Assembly: GCF_000009045.1 (NCBI RefSeq)
Contig: NC_000964.3
Location: 682,001 to 746,000, forward strand
DNA length: 64,000 nucleotides
Direction of reading: 5' to 3'
Origin: Bacillus subtilis subsp. subtilis str. 168
GTDB lineage: Bacteria; Bacillota; Bacilli; Bacillales; Bacillaceae
The translations under genes and the position numbers were made by a program. Below the pieces are notes generated by a model. The model saw only the letters and a list, made by a program, of their open reading frames with translations, did no database searches and was not told the DNA's origin. This document shows, piece after piece, positions 56,983 to 64,000 of the stretch. How positions within the stretch are numbered: the first letter of the stretch is position 1; every line of letters starts with the position of its first letter.

Positions 56983-56994
56983 ATAGTCAAAAAT

Positions 56995-57951
56995 CTATGC
57001 TGATGGAACTGTTGGTTCTCTAAAACGATAATTGATTTCAATGGTTCCATTTGCATGTACTTCTATTTCATCTACTAACAAATGAAGCATTTCGGGGGTA
57101 AGTGTACCTTCCTTCATGAATTTATCTAAGCTCTTTTTAAAATCAATTATTTCTTTTTCAATCTTTTGAAATTCTAGGTCCTTAGATAGTTGGTGAAGGG
57201 TAGTTTCAAAATTTGAAATATCTTCATTGGTGATATTTATGGCTAATTGGTAATCTTCTTTAGATATAACACCATTAGCAAGAGAGATAACTAAATTGGA
57301 TTTATCTCTCTTTTTATCGTTTAATTTTTCATTAATTTCGATTATCTTAGATTCGATTTTTTCTTTGTACTTTAACGCTTTTTCACTTAATTCTTTAAAA
57401 TAATTTTCCTTACTGAATTTCAAATATATCTTATTTAGGTTGGTTATTACTTTATCAGTTAAATCTATTTCACTTACGTAATGATCACTACATGCTTTTA
57501 AACCATGTTTATTATAACTTCCACAAACATAACCTTTTCGATTCTTTTTAAAATGCATTGACCTCCTGCAATCTTTGCAAACCGCAGTATTTGTAAAGAG
57601 ATGTACTTCAGCTTGAGGTCTCCTTCTTTTTCTAGTTATTAAAATCTCTTGTACAATAAGAAAGTCTTCTAAAGGTATGATTGGTTCGTGGCTTTTTTCA
57701 ATAATTATTTGGTTTTCTAGGTTAACTGACCTTCTTCTTTTACTGGTAACACTCGGTCTATATTCTCTACATTGTTGTAGTGTCCCAGTATAGTGAGGAT
57801 TTTCGAGAATTTTTCTTATTGAAGATCCGTGCCATTTGTCAGTAGCGTTCTTTTTGCGGGCAAGCTGCGAGGGACTAGTGACCCCTTCGTTATACAATCC
57901 CCTTGCTATTGCATCAAAGCCTTTTCCAGCAATATATTCTGAAAAGATTCT
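56995..57951 (-). pseudogene. yefB: Large serine recombinase, C-terminal part only (recombinase domain, zinc ribbon, coiled coil)
   Basis: [49 protein letters not shown] and YVCGSY...C motifs. No N-terminal catalytic Ser domain; recognisable homology stops at about 57951. Confidence 0.85.
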
Positions 57952-58213
57952 AATATTTACTATTTTCTCTGCGTTTGCTGAATTTGAGAGAGATATGATT
58001 GTAGAACGAACTCAAGAAGGTAAAATGTTGGCCAAGCAGAATCCGGATTTCCGAGAAGGAAGACCCAAAAAGTTCACAAAGCAGCAAATCAATCATGCAT
58101 TAACATTACTAGAAAATCATTCGTATAAACAAGTTGAAGATATGACTGGGATATCAGTTTCTACACTTGTAAGAGCTAAAAAGAAGAAAGCTGCTGAAGC
58201 TATAAATGGATAA
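57950..58213 (+). pseudogene. yefC: Small serine resolvase/invertase, C-terminal part only (helix E, hinge, HTH)
   Basis: [29 protein letters not shown] and [10 protein letters not shown] motifs. Upstream of about 57950 the frame is just the antisense of yefB, with no YARVS-type catalytic motif. Confidence 0.85.
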
Positions 58214-58287
58214 ATATTGTGAATTAATTATTCAATATCTTGAGAAATTTTTATAAAAGTAATCAAAAGTTTAATGGGGGAAACGAA

Positions 58288-60927
58288 ATGGCGCTCATTG
58301 ATTTAGAAGATAAAATTGCTGAAATAGTGAATCGAGAAGATCATTCAGATTTCTTGTATGAATTACTCGGTGTATATGATGTTCCACGAGCTACAATTAC
58401 GCGCTTGAAAAAAGGAAATCAAAACCTTACAAAACGGGTTGGTGAAGTACACTTAAAGAATAAGGTGTGGTTTAAGGAGGCTAAGAAAGGAAAGCTCTTT
58501 GACGCCCTTATTGATATAGAACAACAAGTTGAATATCTTTCAGCTAAGCCACGATATTTATTAGTTACTGACTATGATGGAGTATTAGCGAAAGATACAA
58601 AAACATTAGAGGCTCTTGATGTTAAATTTGAAGAACTTCCTCAGTATTTCGATTTCTTCCTTGCTTGGAAAGGTATTGAGAAAGTAGAGTTTGAAAAGGA
58701 AAACCCCGCTGATATTAAAGCAGCCGAACGTTTTGCACGGATATATGATGTACTTCGTAAAGAAAACAATATTATTGAGACTAATAGAGGGTTAGATTTA
58801 TTTCTTATTCGTTTACTGTTTTGTTTTTTCGCAGAAGATACTGACATCTTCAAACGAAATAGTTTTACGAATTTAATTAAGACTTTGACTGAAGAAGATG
58901 GTTCAAATCTAAATAAATTATTTGCTGATTTATTTATCGTGTTAGATAAAAATGAACGAGACGATGTTCCATCTTATTTAAAAGAGTTTCCGTATGTAAA
59001 TGGCCAGTTGTTTACTGAACCACATACAGAGTTGGAATTTTCTGCCAAATCCAGAAAGTTAATTATTGAGTGCGGTGAATTATTAAACTGGGCTAAAATC
59101 AATCCTGATATCTTTGGTTCAATGATTCAAGCTGTTGCTTCTGAAGAAAGCCGTAGTTATTTAGGTATGCACTACACAAGTGTCCCCAATATAATGAAGG
59201 TTATTAAACCGCTTTTCCTAGATAAACTTAATCAGTCTTTTTTAGATGCATACGATGATTATACAAAACTTGAAAATCTTCTAACACGAATCGGCAAAAT
59301 TAAATTCTTTGATCCTGCATGTGGTTCAGGGAACTTTTTGATTATTACCTACAAAGAATTACGGCGTATGGAAATCAATATTATAAAACGACTTCAAGAA
59401 CTCTTGGGAGAGTATCTTTATGTACCTTCAGTAACTTTATCTCAATTTTACGGAATAGAGATTGAAGATTTTGCACATGACGTTGCAAAATTATCACTTT
59501 GGATTGCTGAACATCAAATGAATGAAGAATTAAAAAATGAAGTTCATAATGCAGTACGCCCAACGTTACCACTTCATACAGCAGGGGATATTCGTTGTGC
59601 AAATGCTATTAGGGTTGAGTGGACTGAGGTTTGTCCCGCACAAGGATCTGAAGAAGTATATGTTTTTGGTAATCCACCGTATCTTGGTTCAAAAAAACAA
59701 AACAAAGAACATAAATCTGATATGTTATCAATTTTTGGAAAAGTCAAGAATGGTAAAATGCTTGATTATATTTCTGCTTGGTTTTACTTTGGTGCTAAAT
59801 ACGCTTCAACTACAAATGCAAAAGTTGCCTTTGTATCAACAAATTCAGTTACTCAAGGGGAACAGGTTTCTATCTTATGGAATGAGTTATTCAAGTTTGG
59901 AATTCAAATCAATTTTGCCTATAAATCTTTTAAATGGGCGAATAATGCTAAAAATAATGCTGCGGTAATTGTTGTGATTGTAGGTTTTGGCCCGTTAGAT
60001 ACCAAAGTAAACAAGTATTTATTTGTTGATGAAACGAAAAAGCTAGTTTCTAACATTAGTCCCTATTTAACTGATGGTGAAAATATTCTTGTTTCTTCTA
60101 GGACGAAGCCAATTTCAGACTTACCCAAACTGCATTTTGGGAACATGCCTAATGATGGCGGAGGATTACTCTTTACCATTACGGAATATACAGACGCAAT
60201 CAATAAGTATCCTGAATTAGTTCCCTATTTTAAAAAGTTTATAGGTTCAGTAGAGTTTATTAATGGTGGTTTACGGTATTGTTTATGGCTTAATGAAGCA
60301 AAATATGAAAAAATAAAGTCTAATCCTCTAATACAAGAAAGAATCTCAATTTCAAAAAATCACAGGGAAAAATCAACAGATAAAGGAACGAATAAACTTG
60401 CATTAACTCCGTGGAAGTTTAGAGATACTCATGAAACAACTAATTATTCCATTGTTGTTCCATCTGTGTCTTCTGAAAATAGATTTTATATTCCAATGGG
60501 ATTAGCAGGTGCAGATACAATTTTGTCAAATCTAATTTATGTAATTTACGATGCAGAAATTTACCTTCTAGGCATTTTGATGTCACGGATGCATATGACT
60601 TGGGTAAAAGCTGTAGCCGGAAGATTAAAAACTGACTATAGGTACTCTGCAGGTTTATGTTATAACACTTTCCCTATTCCTGAATTATCAACAAGAAGGA
60701 AGAATGAAATTGAAGAAGCAATTCTTGAAATTCTTGATCTTCGTGAAGAGCAGGGTGGTACATTAGCAGAGCTTTATAACCCTTCAACAATGCCAATTGA
60801 ATTAAAAGTAGCACATGAAAAGTTGGATGGAATTGTAGAAAGAGCGTATCGTCAAAAACAATTTGAATCTGATGAAGAACGCTTAGAAGTATTGCTTAAA
60901 TTGTATCAAGAAATGACAGAACGGTAG
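58288..60927 (+). CDS. dnmA: MmeI-like N6-adenine DNA methyltransferase, 879 aa (yeeA)
   Basis: Motif I FFDPACGSGNF (~59305-59337) precedes motif IV GNPPY (59668-59682), the gamma-class order. HYTS, RMHMTW and YNTFP resemble MmeI-family segments. GGGGG RBS before ATG 58288. Confidence 0.92.
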   Translation: MALIDLEDKIAEIVNREDHSDFLYELLGVYDVPRATITRLKKGNQNLTKRVGEVHLKNKVWFKEAKKGKLFDALIDIEQQVEYLSAKPRYLLVTDYDGVLAKDTKTLEALDVKFEELPQYFDFFLAWKGIEKVEFEKENPADIKAAERFARIYDVLRKENNIIETNRGLDLFLIRLLFCFFAEDTDIFKRNSFTNLIKTLTEEDGSNLNKLFADLFIVLDKNERDDVPSYLKEFPYVNGQLFTEPHTELEFSAKSRKLIIECGELLNWAKINPDIFGSMIQAVASEESRSYLGMHYTSVPNIMKVIKPLFLDKLNQSFLDAYDDYTKLENLLTRIGKIKFFDPACGSGNFLIITYKELRRMEINIIKRLQELLGEYLYVPSVTLSQFYGIEIEDFAHDVAKLSLWIAEHQMNEELKNEVHNAVRPTLPLHTAGDIRCANAIRVEWTEVCPAQGSEEVYVFGNPPYLGSKKQNKEHKSDMLSIFGKVKNGKMLDYISAWFYFGAKYASTTNAKVAFVSTNSVTQGEQVSILWNELFKFGIQINFAYKSFKWANNAKNNAAVIVVIVGFGPLDTKVNKYLFVDETKKLVSNISPYLTDGENILVSSRTKPISDLPKLHFGNMPNDGGGLLFTITEYTDAINKYPELVPYFKKFIGSVEFINGGLRYCLWLNEAKYEKIKSNPLIQERISISKNHREKSTDKGTNKLALTPWKFRDTHETTNYSIVVPSVSSENRFYIPMGLAGADTILSNLIYVIYDAEIYLLGILMSRMHMTWVKAVAGRLKTDYRYSAGLCYNTFPIPELSTRRKNEIEEAILEILDLREEQGGTLAELYNPSTMPIELKVAHEKLDGIVERAYRQKQFESDEERLEVLLKLYQEMTER

Positions 60928-60938
60928 GTGTAAGGTGT

Positions 60939-62738
60939 ATGGAAAATATAATTGAAATTAATTATAACCAAACTGGTAAAAGTAAGAAAACAAATGAATA
61001 CGGTATGCGTGAAATGCAGGCAAGAGCTTTTGAAAAACGTAACTCACAATATCTCTTAGTTAAAGCACCGCCAGCTTCTGGGAAATCTAGAGCTTTAATG
61101 TTTATCGGTTTGGATAAGCTCATAAATCAAGGTTTGAGGAAAGTGATTGTTGCTGTACCTGAACGCTCTATAGGTTCTTCATTTAAAAATACGGATTTAA
61201 AAAGTTATGGTTTCTTTGAAAATTGGAAAGTTGATCCTAGAAATAATTTAACTGTTGGCGGAGATAACTCTAAGGTTAAATCTTTTGTTCGTTTTATGGA
61301 ATCGGACGATCAGGTGTTAATATGTACGCACTCTACTTTGCGATTTGCGTTTGAAAAAATTGATGATAAAGCATTTGATAATTGTTTACTTGCAATAGAT
61401 GAATTTCACCATGTATCGGCAGATGTCAATTCTCGATTAGGTGAATTGTTAAGAAGTATTATTCATAATTCATCAGCACATATTGTAGCGATGACTGGGT
61501 CGTATTTCCGTGGAGATTCTGTACCAATTTTATTACCAGAAGATGAGGAATTATTTGACAAGGTAACTTATTCCTATTATGAACAACTTGATGGATATGA
61601 ATATCTAAAGGGATTTGGTATAGGATATCACTTCTATCAAGGCCAGTACACATCAGCTATTAATGAAGTATTGGATACAAATAAGAAAACAATCGTTCAT
61701 ATTCCAAATGTAAACTCAGGGGAATCGACAAAGGATAAGTACGATGAAGTTGGTAAGATACTTGATATGATTGGTGAAGTTGAATATCAAGATGATGATA
61801 CTGGAATTATTTATGTTAAGCGACATTCTGACGGTAAAACATTGAAAATTGCAGATTTAGTAGATGACCAAGTTGGAAGAGAAAATGTCGTTGCGTATTT
61901 GCGTAATATTGAAGCCCTAGACGATTTAGATATAATTATTGCTCTTGGTATGGCGAAAGAGGGCTTTGACTGGCCGTTTTGTGAACATACTTTGACAGTT
62001 GGTTATCGTGGCTCACTTACAGAAATAGTACAAATAATTGGGCGCTGTACACGTGATAGTTACAATAAAACCTATGCTCAATTTACCAACCTAATCGCAA
62101 TGCCTGATGCAAAGGATGAAGTAGTGACTTATACAGTGAATACAATGCTTAAAGCTATTTCTGCCTCACTTTTGATGGAGCAGGTCCTTACACCTGACTT
62201 TAAATTTAAACGTAGAAGAAATGAAAGTGAAAAATCTTCTACTACAGGAGAATTATTCGTTAAGGGATTGAAAGAACCATCAACAGAAAATGTCAAAAAG
62301 ATTATTGAAAATGATATTAATGATTTAAAAGCAAAAATCATGCAAGATTCACAAGTCCAAAAAACATTTAGTGGAGAAGTAGATCCCAAAGTATTGAACA
62401 AAGTGTTGATTCCGAAAGTTATTCAAAAAGTATATCCAAATTTATCAGATGAGGAAATTGAGGAAGTTAGACAGCACGTTGTTCTAGATACAGTTATGAA
62501 AGGTGCTAAGTCTGAAGTTGTAGGAAGTAAAGAATTTATAAGAATGGCAGATAAGTTTATAAACATTGAGGATTTAGATATCAATCTGATTGATTCCATC
62601 AATCCGTTCCAAAAAGCATTTGAGGTTCTATCGAAAGAATTGAACTCACCAGTGCTAAAACTGATTCAGGAAACTATTGATGCAAAACGTATTAATTTTG
62701 ATGAAGATGAACTAGTATTCATATGGCCAAAGGTTTAG
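60939..62738 (+). CDS. yeeB: SF2 (DExH) helicase/ATPase, 599 aa, probably C-terminally truncated
   Basis: APPASGKS, IDEFHH, AMTGS, MAKEGFDWP and QIIGRCTR motifs; 11 bp after dnmA; ends at TAG 62736-62738. Confidence 0.9.
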   Translation: MENIIEINYNQTGKSKKTNEYGMREMQARAFEKRNSQYLLVKAPPASGKSRALMFIGLDKLINQGLRKVIVAVPERSIGSSFKNTDLKSYGFFENWKVDPRNNLTVGGDNSKVKSFVRFMESDDQVLICTHSTLRFAFEKIDDKAFDNCLLAIDEFHHVSADVNSRLGELLRSIIHNSSAHIVAMTGSYFRGDSVPILLPEDEELFDKVTYSYYEQLDGYEYLKGFGIGYHFYQGQYTSAINEVLDTNKKTIVHIPNVNSGESTKDKYDEVGKILDMIGEVEYQDDDTGIIYVKRHSDGKTLKIADLVDDQVGRENVVAYLRNIEALDDLDIIIALGMAKEGFDWPFCEHTLTVGYRGSLTEIVQIIGRCTRDSYNKTYAQFTNLIAMPDAKDEVVTYTVNTMLKAISASLLMEQVLTPDFKFKRRRNESEKSSTTGELFVKGLKEPSTENVKKIIENDINDLKAKIMQDSQVQKTFSGEVDPKVLNKVLIPKVIQKVYPNLSDEEIEEVRQHVVLDTVMKGAKSEVVGSKEFIRMADKFINIEDLDINLIDSINPFQKAFEVLSKELNSPVLKLIQETIDAKRINFDEDELVFIWPKV

Positions 62739-62861
62739 GAATTTTATCGTTCAACTGGTAGAAGACCTGATTCAAAATCTGAAGACCCACTTGAAAGGCG
62801 TATGGGTGAAGCTGTATTATACATGCAAGAGCTTAGGAGGAAACGTGAAAATGGCAAGTAA
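62739..62861 (+). pseudogene. In-frame continuation of yeeB beyond the TAG (40 codons, then TAA)
   Basis: Hand translation: EFYRSTGRRPDSKSEDPLERRMGEAVLYMQELRRKRENGK*. The TAA (62859-62861) overlaps the yeeC start region. Confidence 0.8.
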
Positions 62862-63999
62862 TAGATACCATTCTATTAATGAAATCATGGAAAGTCAGCT
62901 GTTTTACCAAATCACAACACCACCTAAGAAAACACAAAAAGCCCAGTATGATCCTGAAGTTGAAAAGTTTTTGGAGATTATTGAATTCGTCAAAGAAAAT
63001 GGGCGAGAACCCCAAAAAGTCCCTACTGATTTAACTGAAAGAAGTTTAGCAAGTCGATTAATTGGGATTCGGAAAGATCCTGATCGTATGGAATATTTGA
63101 AAGAGTATGATGAAATTGGATTACTTGAAGTAAGATCGAAGGAACTAACAATTCCTAAAATTTCTTCAATTGATGATATTCTAAAAAGTGGCTTATCTGC
63201 ATTATTAGGTGATAATTTAAATAATGATATAACTAGGTCAATTTTTGATACAAGTTCACTTCAAAAGGTTACGACAATGCCTGAATACGTTGCAAAGCGT
63301 AAAAAAATAAAAGATTTTGGAAAGTTTGAAGAGCTATTCAAGAAGTGCCACAAGGAAATTACAGAGGGTAAACGAAAAATTTTAACTTTCAAAAATGAAC
63401 AAGACATACAGTCAAATAGTTTTTATATATTAAAAGGAGTTCTTCTTTATGTTGAAGATGTGGGAGAACGTAAAAAAGCAAAGGGAAAAACCAATGCTAG
63501 ACTTCGATGTATATTTGAAAATGGAACGGAATCAGATATGTTACTACGTTCCTTATCAGCGGAGTTATATAAACATGGTAGACGTGTGACCGACAATGAA
63601 GATACATTGTTGGATAATGTTAGAGAAGATGATGTTTCGACTGGCTTTATTTACGTACTAAAATCTTTGAGTACAGATCCGCAAATTAGTTCCATTAAGA
63701 ATTTATATAAGATCGGTTTTACAACTGGTTCAGTAGAAAATAGAATCAGGAATGCAGAAAATCAATCAACTTATCTTTATGCTCCAGTAGAAATTGTAAC
63801 CACATATCAAGTGTTCAATATGAATGCTAGCAAATTTGAGACGGCAATCCATCATGCGCTAGCAAATAATAATTTGGATGTTTCTATTTTGGGGGCAAAT
63901 GGAAAGATGTTAGTTCCTAAAGAGTGGTTCGTTGTCACACTTGAAGATTTACAAGCTGTAATAGATGAGATTGTGATGATGGTTCATCTTTATGACTAA
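62851..63999 (+). CDS. yeeC: Protein with a C-terminal T5orf172/GIY-YIG-like nuclease domain, 382 aa
   Basis: AGGAGG (62835-62840) precedes ATG 62851; GFIYVLKS...LYKIGFTTGSVENRI...FETAIH motif. The ORF-track start at 62791 is too early. Confidence 0.88.
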   Translation: MASNRYHSINEIMESQLFYQITTPPKKTQKAQYDPEVEKFLEIIEFVKENGREPQKVPTDLTERSLASRLIGIRKDPDRMEYLKEYDEIGLLEVRSKELTIPKISSIDDILKSGLSALLGDNLNNDITRSIFDTSSLQKVTTMPEYVAKRKKIKDFGKFEELFKKCHKEITEGKRKILTFKNEQDIQSNSFYILKGVLLYVEDVGERKKAKGKTNARLRCIFENGTESDMLLRSLSAELYKHGRRVTDNEDTLLDNVREDDVSTGFIYVLKSLSTDPQISSIKNLYKIGFTTGSVENRIRNAENQSTYLYAPVEIVTTYQVFNMNASKFETAIHHALANNNLDVSILGANGKMLVPKEWFVVTLEDLQAVIDEIVMMVHLYD

Positions 64000-64000
64000 A

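Follow-up and report, generated by a model that had tools for sequence, protein, structure and literature searches.

Introduction

One group of MmeI homologs lacks the PD-ExK nuclease motif of MmeI and is encoded next to genes for a helicase and for a protein of the GIY-YIG type (Morgan et al. 2009, PMC2731913). For this YeeA/YeeB/YeeC group a type I-like division of labor has been proposed, in which the MmeI-like subunit provides recognition and single-strand protective methylation, and the helicase and GIY-YIG protein cut (PMC2731913). Here we analyze the dnmA (yeeA)-yeeB-yeeC locus in a 64,000-nucleotide (nt) stretch of the chromosome of Bacillus subtilis subsp. subtilis str. 168 (NC_000964.3, positions 682,001 to 746,000; hereafter the window, numbered from its first letter). 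The window locus is that of the group: the dnmA product matches the five MmeI domains of Pfam (MmeI_N, MmeI_hel, MmeI_Mtase, MmeI_TRD, and MmeI_C, with E from 1e-21 to 3e-102), a DEAD/ResIII helicase gene lies directly downstream of dnmA and is followed by a T5orf172/MUG113 gene, and the gene order is conserved. It differs from the intact members, which include other B. subtilis alleles with a helicase of 640 amino acids (aa), in that its helicase gene, yeeB, carries a premature stop codon.

DnmA methylates GACGAG (PMC7261158). Deletion of dnmA was without effect on growth or plasmid transformation, and an inactive or non-canonical system was suggested (Nye et al. 2020, PMC7261158); deletion of yeeB or yeeC was without effect on the phages Nf, Phi29, and SBS-PhiJ, the last of which has 44 GACGAG sites (Fernandez et al. 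2023, PMC9973331). The locus has accordingly been termed a non-functional restriction-modification (RM) relic, and DnmA an orphan methyltransferase, in B. subtilis PY79 and NCIB 3610 (PMC7261158, PMC9973331), which matches the initial annotation of the window, made from the letters alone, in which the locus is described as a non-restricting orphan methyltransferase in laboratory strains. The genes in those papers are the ones analyzed here, with an active methylase and no restriction or defense. B. subtilis YeeB and YeeC were also said to lack C-terminal stretches in comparison with Vibrio crassostreae (PMC9973331). New relative to both papers are that the missing YeeB residues are still encoded past one stop, that the difference is a one-base polymorphism, and that intact alleles occur in B. 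subtilis. The strings “truncat”, “nonsense”, and “pseudogene” are absent from both papers, and “stop codon” appears in their cloning methods only; among the full-text papers found to name both yeeB and yeeC, judged for the most part by titles and abstracts, none was seen to describe the single-nucleotide polymorphism (SNP) presented below.

Two other precedents are relevant. In V. crassostreae 7F1_18, gene inactivation showed that yeeAB gives resistance to one phage group (bioRxiv 10.1101/2021.05.05.442762). This is a homologous methylase-helicase pair from a distant proteobacterial host, and a Vibrio homolog in our comparison (L047) has a full-length helicase with the C-terminal module discussed below, unlike window YeeB. 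Disrupted MmeI-family genes have also been reactivated by frame correction (Morgan et al. 2009), likewise starting from small lesions recognizable via relatives; those genes encode single-polypeptide enzymes, whereas here the lesion lies in a separate helicase subunit and an intact allele is found in the same species.

A conserved YeeB tail is encoded beyond a premature stop

The yeeB frame runs through TGG CCA AAG GTT to a TAG at 62736–62738 and then stays open for 40 codons (EFYRSTGRRPDSKSEDPLERRMGEAVLYMQELRRKRENGK), up to a TAA at 62859–62861 that overlaps the yeeC ATG (62851) by 11 nt. With the early stop, yeeB and yeeC are spaced by 112 nt, and 11 nt separate dnmA from yeeB (60928–60938). 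The initial annotation had reported these features, including the placement of the yeeC ribosome-binding site inside the tail, and every coordinate and spacing in it proved correct on re-checking. An open tail was rejected as evidence by itself: after 25% of the long open stretches in the window, the frame likewise stays open for 40 codons or more (composition-based P = 0.035). Openness is therefore weak evidence, and the significance of the tail comes from homology.

The 40-residue tail is identical to the last 40 residues of an intact homolog, P0012, at 33 of 40 positions (83%, E 4e-22). In a search with the read-through protein, matches of the B. subtilis type were 598–599 aa long, and non-subtilis relatives at 65–92% identity, from Bacillus, Falsibacillus, Heyndrickxia, Paenibacillus, Staphylococcus, Enterococcus, and others, were 635–649 aa long and covered 99–100% of the query, with a single short exception (P0106, see below). 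The C-termini of the close relatives follow the pattern IWPKV-E-EFF/YxxxGRRPDxKSxDPxExRMGEAVIYMQELRRK...

The same holds at greater distance. The TAG column is crossed by one uninterrupted match in all 79 complete loci among the matches listed, which are one-genome-per-species contigs, mostly of distant relatives and without B. subtilis itself, from Firmicutes, Proteobacteria, Bacteroidota, Actinomycetota, Planctomycetota, candidate phyla, and others. In every one of these loci yeeB is followed by a homolog of yeeC, and in most a dnmA homolog was detected upstream. When 83 full-length homologs were aligned, all C-termini fell between −3 and +9 residues from the B. subtilis read-through end. 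None of the 83 ends at IWPKV, the outcome that the initial annotation had named as speaking against its proposal. Because homologs from many phyla read through the TAG column and end nearby, the tail is ancestral. The ancestral YeeB is 640 aa long, much as first suggested, in line with 640-aa gene calls in other B. subtilis-group assemblies and with the 635–649 aa of the relatives; the window allele, with its stop at codon 600, falls short of this full-length helicase with its C-terminal module, which all 83 homologs and 11 other B. subtilis-group assemblies possess.

Within the tail, several positions are nearly invariant across the 83 homologs: P610 (100%), E619 (98%), R621 (94%), and D616 (93%), as well as A/G623. 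The untranslated B. subtilis tail retains all five. On average, conservation is lower in the tail than in the YeeB core, with a mean top-residue frequency of 0.54 vs. 0.76.

The short exception mentioned above, P0106 from Heyndrickxia coagulans (498 aa), is normal up to ...LIPKV and then continues into an unrelated GLAE. This independent truncation in another genus, through a putative frameshift or an assembly error, hints that the helicase subunit has been lost repeatedly.

The stop is a derived SNP, seen in one clonal background

Codon 600 is GAG in B. mediterraneensis (L001) and GAA in the close relatives L081, L083, L084, and L085. It is also GAG, at the same chromosomal site (window 62736–62738), in 11 B. 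subtilis-group assemblies (L088/L093, L089, L090/L096, L094, L095, and L097–L102), in all of which yeeB is called with 640 aa and an 11-nt overlap with yeeC. Natural isolates with GAG include the assemblies GCA_024802585.1, GCA_020783355.1, and GCA_012648345.1. The relatives thus have a sense codon where the initial annotation had asked for a comparison, and its proposal that one point mutation made the TAG is borne out, GAG being among the ancestral codons it named.

Over the 7-kb island that carries the locus, the GAG assemblies differ from the window by 2–5 SNPs, always including 62736 T/G and 63194 T/C. The core genes flanking the island differ from the window by 0, 19, 92, or ~98 SNPs, or are indel-shifted, so the intact allele is present in several genomic backgrounds. 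Since GAG occurs at the same site in B. subtilis-group strains with a nearly identical island, TAG is the derived state, a G>T transversion at 62736 that changed Glu600 to amber. We regard it as nearly certain that a derived SNP truncates a conserved module of YeeB.

TAG is carried by five assemblies (L082, L086, L087, L091, and L092) and the window. The flanks of L087, L091, L092, and the window are identical over 2.1 kb on the left (0 SNPs), and the right flanks of the three loci L087, L091, and L092 are identical over 8 kb. In the sample examined, the TAG allele is by these comparisons confined to one clonal flank background that includes the window genome.

At least 1000 contigs carry exactly the 599-aa protein and 32 carry exactly the intact one; frequent sequencing of laboratory derivatives probably lies behind this ratio. 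A sequencing or assembly error, which the initial annotation had listed among the outcomes that would undo its proposal, is at odds with a 599-aa product on so many contigs from several sources and with a TAG in five separately fetched, independent assemblies; a natural end of YeeB at IWPKV is at odds with the homologs, none of which ends at the TAG column. Both forms of this explanation are refuted by these data and have virtually no chance of being correct.

The intact allele is easily overlooked. The 640-aa protein is filed under a 504-aa fragment, P0076, which represents its 90% cluster, and we located it via the genomic neighbors of YeeC variants and then via the intact protein itself. 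Because the fragment represents the cluster, a listing of representatives without a full-length match does not mean that the allele is absent. A conclusion from such a listing that the protein database lacks an intact allele of the B. subtilis type is wrong.

P0076 and two further proteins of the B. subtilis type from Logan assemblies (P0136 and P0137) show other disruptions: yeeB is frameshifted to 504 aa, and yeeC is split into 216 and 183 aa at an A-run. These could represent later decay in laboratory derivatives or homopolymer sequencing errors.

Across positions 62736/63194/63638 the haplotypes can be ordered in time from the ancestral G-C-C through T-C-C (L087) and T-T-C (window) to T-T-T (L091 and L092). 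The change 63194 C>T (yeeC S115L) is shared by the window, L091, and L092 and is present neither in L087 nor in any GAG allele; 63638 C>T (yeeC S263L) is found in L091 and L092 only. No further island SNPs were seen on the TAG background, and each of these two is a non-synonymous change in yeeC. Their appearance after the TAG is suggestive of relaxed constraint, with counts that are tiny. Residue 115 of YeeC sits in a predicted disordered linker.

This pattern touches on the possibility that the loss was selected, that is, that inactivation of the effector arm relieved self-damage or eased DNA uptake in the lineage from which the laboratory strain came, which would be compatible with a truncation that abolished restriction. 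The restriction of TAG to one flank background while GAG occupies several, and the two later non-synonymous changes in yeeC, would fit such a history. The same pattern is explained equally well by one neutral SNP hitch-hiking in a clone, the counts are very small, and selection is proposed here from the alleles themselves; we consider it improbable.

No second lesion detected in dnmA, yeeB, or yeeC

Apart from the stop codon, the three genes are well preserved. YeeB agrees with the consensus at 206 of 206 columns that are at least 95% conserved among 83 homologs; at columns conserved to the same level, YeeC agrees at 32 of 32 and DnmA at 131 of 132, the exception being M362 in place of Leu (window 59371–59373). 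No second lesion was found at the conserved columns of dnmA, yeeB, or yeeC, and the TAG is, at the level of sequence, the only detectable lesion in the locus. M362 is a conservative substitution in an enzyme, DnmA, of known activity.

YeeC aligns with its B. mediterraneensis homolog over residues 3–382 at 86% identity, and its length of 382 aa compares with 381 aa in close relatives that have the same C-terminal end. The published view that YeeC lacks C-terminal stretches (PMC9973331) is thus not borne out against close relatives.

An undecayed tail invites the alternative that the UAG is read through, in a programmed or leaky manner, so that some full-length YeeB is made and the tail is still used. 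The untranslated codons keep the conserved residues, and their lineage-specific non-synonymous to synonymous changes (2:7) stand in the same ratio as those of the yeeB body (29:98), with no excess of non-synonymous change in the tail (Fisher p = 1). With B. subtilis alleles that are only a few SNPs apart, this ratio carries no information: given at most five SNPs between the islands of different strains, too little time has passed since the TAG arose for the tail to decay. The stop is not conserved, since neither other B. subtilis strains nor any of the relatives have it, and so the UAG is not a recoding signal. Read-through is therefore a very remote prospect, and wild-type B. subtilis is not known to have an amber suppressor.

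The stop removes most of a predicted C-terminal helix-loop-helix module

The intact homolog P0012 (92% identical) was modeled with AlphaFold2 from a 94-sequence alignment, giving a mean predicted local distance difference test (pLDDT) score of 83. Its C-terminal end is predicted to consist of a helix (590–607), a loop with the invariant proline, and a second helix (618–638), at pLDDT 87–91. The TAG position corresponds to residue 601 of P0012, within the first helix. Because the stop sits inside a confidently modeled helix, truncation would remove an ordered element rather than a floppy tail. The residues not made in the TAG allele are the last 41 (Glu600 and the 40-residue tail), whose codons and TAA are still in the DNA. 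Judged by the model, the lost piece is about two thirds of a helix-loop-helix module that is conserved family-wide.

A second copy of this module is predicted in the nuclease subunit. Profile–profile alignment with hhalign relates YeeB ~590–635 to YeeC 34–79 (probability 94.8%, E 5e-8), with the common pattern F-x4-G-R-x-P-x8-E-x2-L/M-A. In the AlphaFold2 model of YeeC the corresponding region forms helices 35–50 and 61–75 joined by a loop (pLDDT 83–90), with low-confidence linkers on either side (24–32 and 96–130). By the same procedure the module resembled neither DnmA nor any other part of YeeB (hhalign probability 2%, plus trivial self-overlap only). No Pfam family matched the lost module even at E 10, and a PDB sequence-profile search matched the helicase core only (positions 36–164), not the C-terminal module.

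A Foldseek search with the predicted YeeB structure returned generic superfamily 2 (SF2) helicases only, among whose top PDB matches are type I HsdR (EcoR124I) and type ISP LlaBIII. This likeness is that of the generic SF2 fold (TM ~0.35), and YeeB has no nuclease domain of its own, unlike those enzymes. HsdR uses its C-terminal helical domain for complex assembly, and by analogy the YeeB module may have the same role. From its conservation, predicted structure, and duplication, we infer that the helix-loop-helix module is an assembly or docking element that would connect the motor to the nuclease and/or to DnmA.

The yeeB–yeeC junction

The initial annotation had read the 11-nt overlap between the read-through yeeB frame and yeeC as a layout for translational coupling, and such an overlap is indeed real in every intact close relative: it appears in the gene calls of L081, L083–L085, L088–L090, and L093–L102. 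A tight or overlapping junction is typical of the family: of 82 loci, 60 show an overlap and a further 15 a gap no longer than 20 nt, with start codons called heuristically.

The early stop does not appear to bury the yeeC start. No RNA structure hiding the yeeC ribosome-binding site after the early stop was predicted (z 0.57 vs. shuffles), and the Shine–Dalgarno (SD) sequence is predicted to be unpaired. Because yeeC keeps this strong, unstructured SD, loss of coupling need not abolish YeeC synthesis, and the dependence of yeeC on yeeB translation may be partial, if there is any. Between yeeB and yeeC, searches for an internal promoter or terminator gave consensus-level matches only, at or below the shuffled expectation. 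A promoter-like site at 62791–62820 belongs to these matches and was not relied on.

The overlap also contains a 3-nt in-frame insertion (62857–62859), reading ATGGCAAGTAATAG in B. subtilis vs. ATGGCAAATAG in the nearest relatives outside the species. The insertion gives YeeC an additional residue, Ser3, turns the old yeeB stop from TAG to TAA, and is present in both the GAG and the TAG alleles.

Possible consequences for restriction

The proposed mechanism is as follows. In the TAG allele the helicase core would probably be made yet be unable to work with its partners. The copies of the module, one on the motor and one on a flexible tether of the nuclease, may bind to one another, or the methyltransferase may be the partner of both; with the YeeB copy lost, a soluble helicase core would fail to join the complex, and restriction would be lost. 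DnmA, a methyltransferase that works by itself (PMC7261158), would continue to methylate GACGAG. As a second and smaller effect, replacement of the 11-nt overlap by a 112-nt untranslated spacer would probably lower YeeC synthesis, not abolish it.

For the reading as a whole, in which a derived SNP truncates a conserved YeeB module and causes the non-restricting phenotype, we estimate a probability of roughly 0.75, which blends a very secure part with a less secure one. The less secure part is causation: as the best available account of the published negative results, the TAG SNP is a plausible cause of the phenotype, at about even odds. Several points weigh against the reading. The link from SNP to inactivity is a proposal at the level of sequence, and the putative role of the module comes from its conservation, predicted structure, and duplication in YeeC. 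With an intact helicase core and every motif of it in place, the 599-aa protein could keep activity. The strong SD of yeeC, predicted to be unpaired, weakens the part of the proposal in which yeeC is silenced. The clonal confinement of the TAG is based on just five assemblies and the window. The published negatives are narrow, covering natural transformation, in which DNA is taken up single-stranded, and three phages, and the truncated system might work under other conditions. Restriction by the intact allele in B. subtilis is likewise presumed.

Some of these points feed directly into the alternative that the truncation is neutral, with the 599-aa YeeB working, or with non-restriction unrelated to the SNP and due instead to the assays, a missing trigger, or low expression. 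All conserved residues of the translated YeeB portion are in place along with the helicase core, yeeC is intact with its own SD, the tail is on average less conserved than the core, and the assays were limited to three phages and natural transformation (PMC7261158, PMC9973331). Against neutrality, the tail is present in 83 of 83 full-length homologs, homologs from different phyla keep several of its residues almost without exception, the stop interrupts a helix predicted with confidence, and it is the sole lesion in a locus reported to be inactive. On balance a neutral truncation seems rather unlikely, and we favor an effector disabled by the loss of the YeeB C-terminus.

If the inactivity is due to this SNP, the conclusion that the locus is a non-functional relic holds for the laboratory lineage and not for the species. 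A further, more tentative step, to which we give somewhat less than even odds, is that the orphan or dead-relic status is a one-SNP artefact and that wild GAG strains run an active restriction system of MmeI-type, helicase, and GIY-YIG subunits, with single-strand methylation and docking through the module. A one-base reversion in strain 168 would then activate the system in what is the best genetic model among Gram-positive bacteria. An isogenic pair differing by one base, together with natural intact isolates, would offer a handle on whether and how this family, which ranges from Firmicutes to Proteobacteria and Bacteroidota, restricts DNA, and the truncation draws attention to a small module, with a second copy in the nuclease subunit, as a candidate for an assembly element. 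The kind of mutation is ordinary, a restriction component hit by a nonsense SNP; the value of the finding is practical, in that it qualifies a published conclusion on a model organism. In annotation, it would be preferable to mark yeeB entries of the BSU06770 type as a truncated allele.

Feature coordinates and genomic context

Table 1. Features at the dnmA-yeeB-yeeC locus (window coordinates)
Feature	Position	Strand	Description
dnmA (yeeA), MmeI-family N6-adenine DNA methyltransferase with target-recognition domain	58288..60927	+	879 aa, intact; Pfam, PADLOC
yeeB, truncated allele, SF2 (DEAD/ResIII) helicase	60939..62738	+	ATG at 60939; 599 aa, ending ...IWPKV at the premature TAG
Premature amber codon in yeeB	62736..62738	+	Derived G>T SNP at 62736; ancestral GAG, Glu600
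Former yeeB 3′ end, untranslated	62739..62861	+	40 sense codons and original TAA; homology to P0012 C-terminus
Predicted YeeB C-terminal helix-loop-helix module, coding region (residues ~590–635)	62706..62843	+	TAG cuts first helix; AlphaFold2 model of P0012, hhalign
yeeC Shine–Dalgarno sequence AGGAGG	62835..62840	+	10-nt spacing to ATG; inside dead yeeB tail
yeeC, T5orf172/GIY-YIG-type nuclease with N-terminal helical module	62851..63999	+	382 aa, full length; Pfam T5orf172, MUG113
YeeC residues 34–79, predicted helix-loop-helix homologous to YeeB C-terminal module	62950..63087	+	hhalign, AlphaFold2

PADLOC classifies DnmA as a type IIG restriction enzyme-methyltransferase and relates YeeB weakly to PbeA and YeeC to PDC-S57; its model set contains no dedicated model for the dnmA-yeeB-yeeC trio.

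Toward the 3′ end of the window the gene order is dagK, rlmCD, the yefC/yefB remnants, dnmA, yeeB, and yeeC. Around 56,990, directly past rlmCD, the G+C content drops from ~0.50 to ~0.33, and it remains low over the rest of the window; a low-GC island in this region has also been described in PMC9973331.

The yefC-yeeC island (56990–64000) differs by 0–5 SNPs in 7 kb between the window and L089, L094, L097, L100, and L101, in which the neighboring dagK-rlmCD region differs by at least ~4%. A near-identical island on diverged flanks suggests that the island has recently spread horizontally or recombined within the B. subtilis group, as far as the compared assemblies can indicate.

At the start of the island, two recombinase remnants face each other. 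The yefC gene (56995–57897, − strand) encodes Recombinase and Zn-ribbon domains without the N-terminal resolvase catalytic domain, and yefB (57836–58213, + strand) retains just the last ~30 positions of the resolvase catalytic domain and a helix-turn-helix. Together with the G+C drop at ~56,990, these remnants fit an immobilized element.

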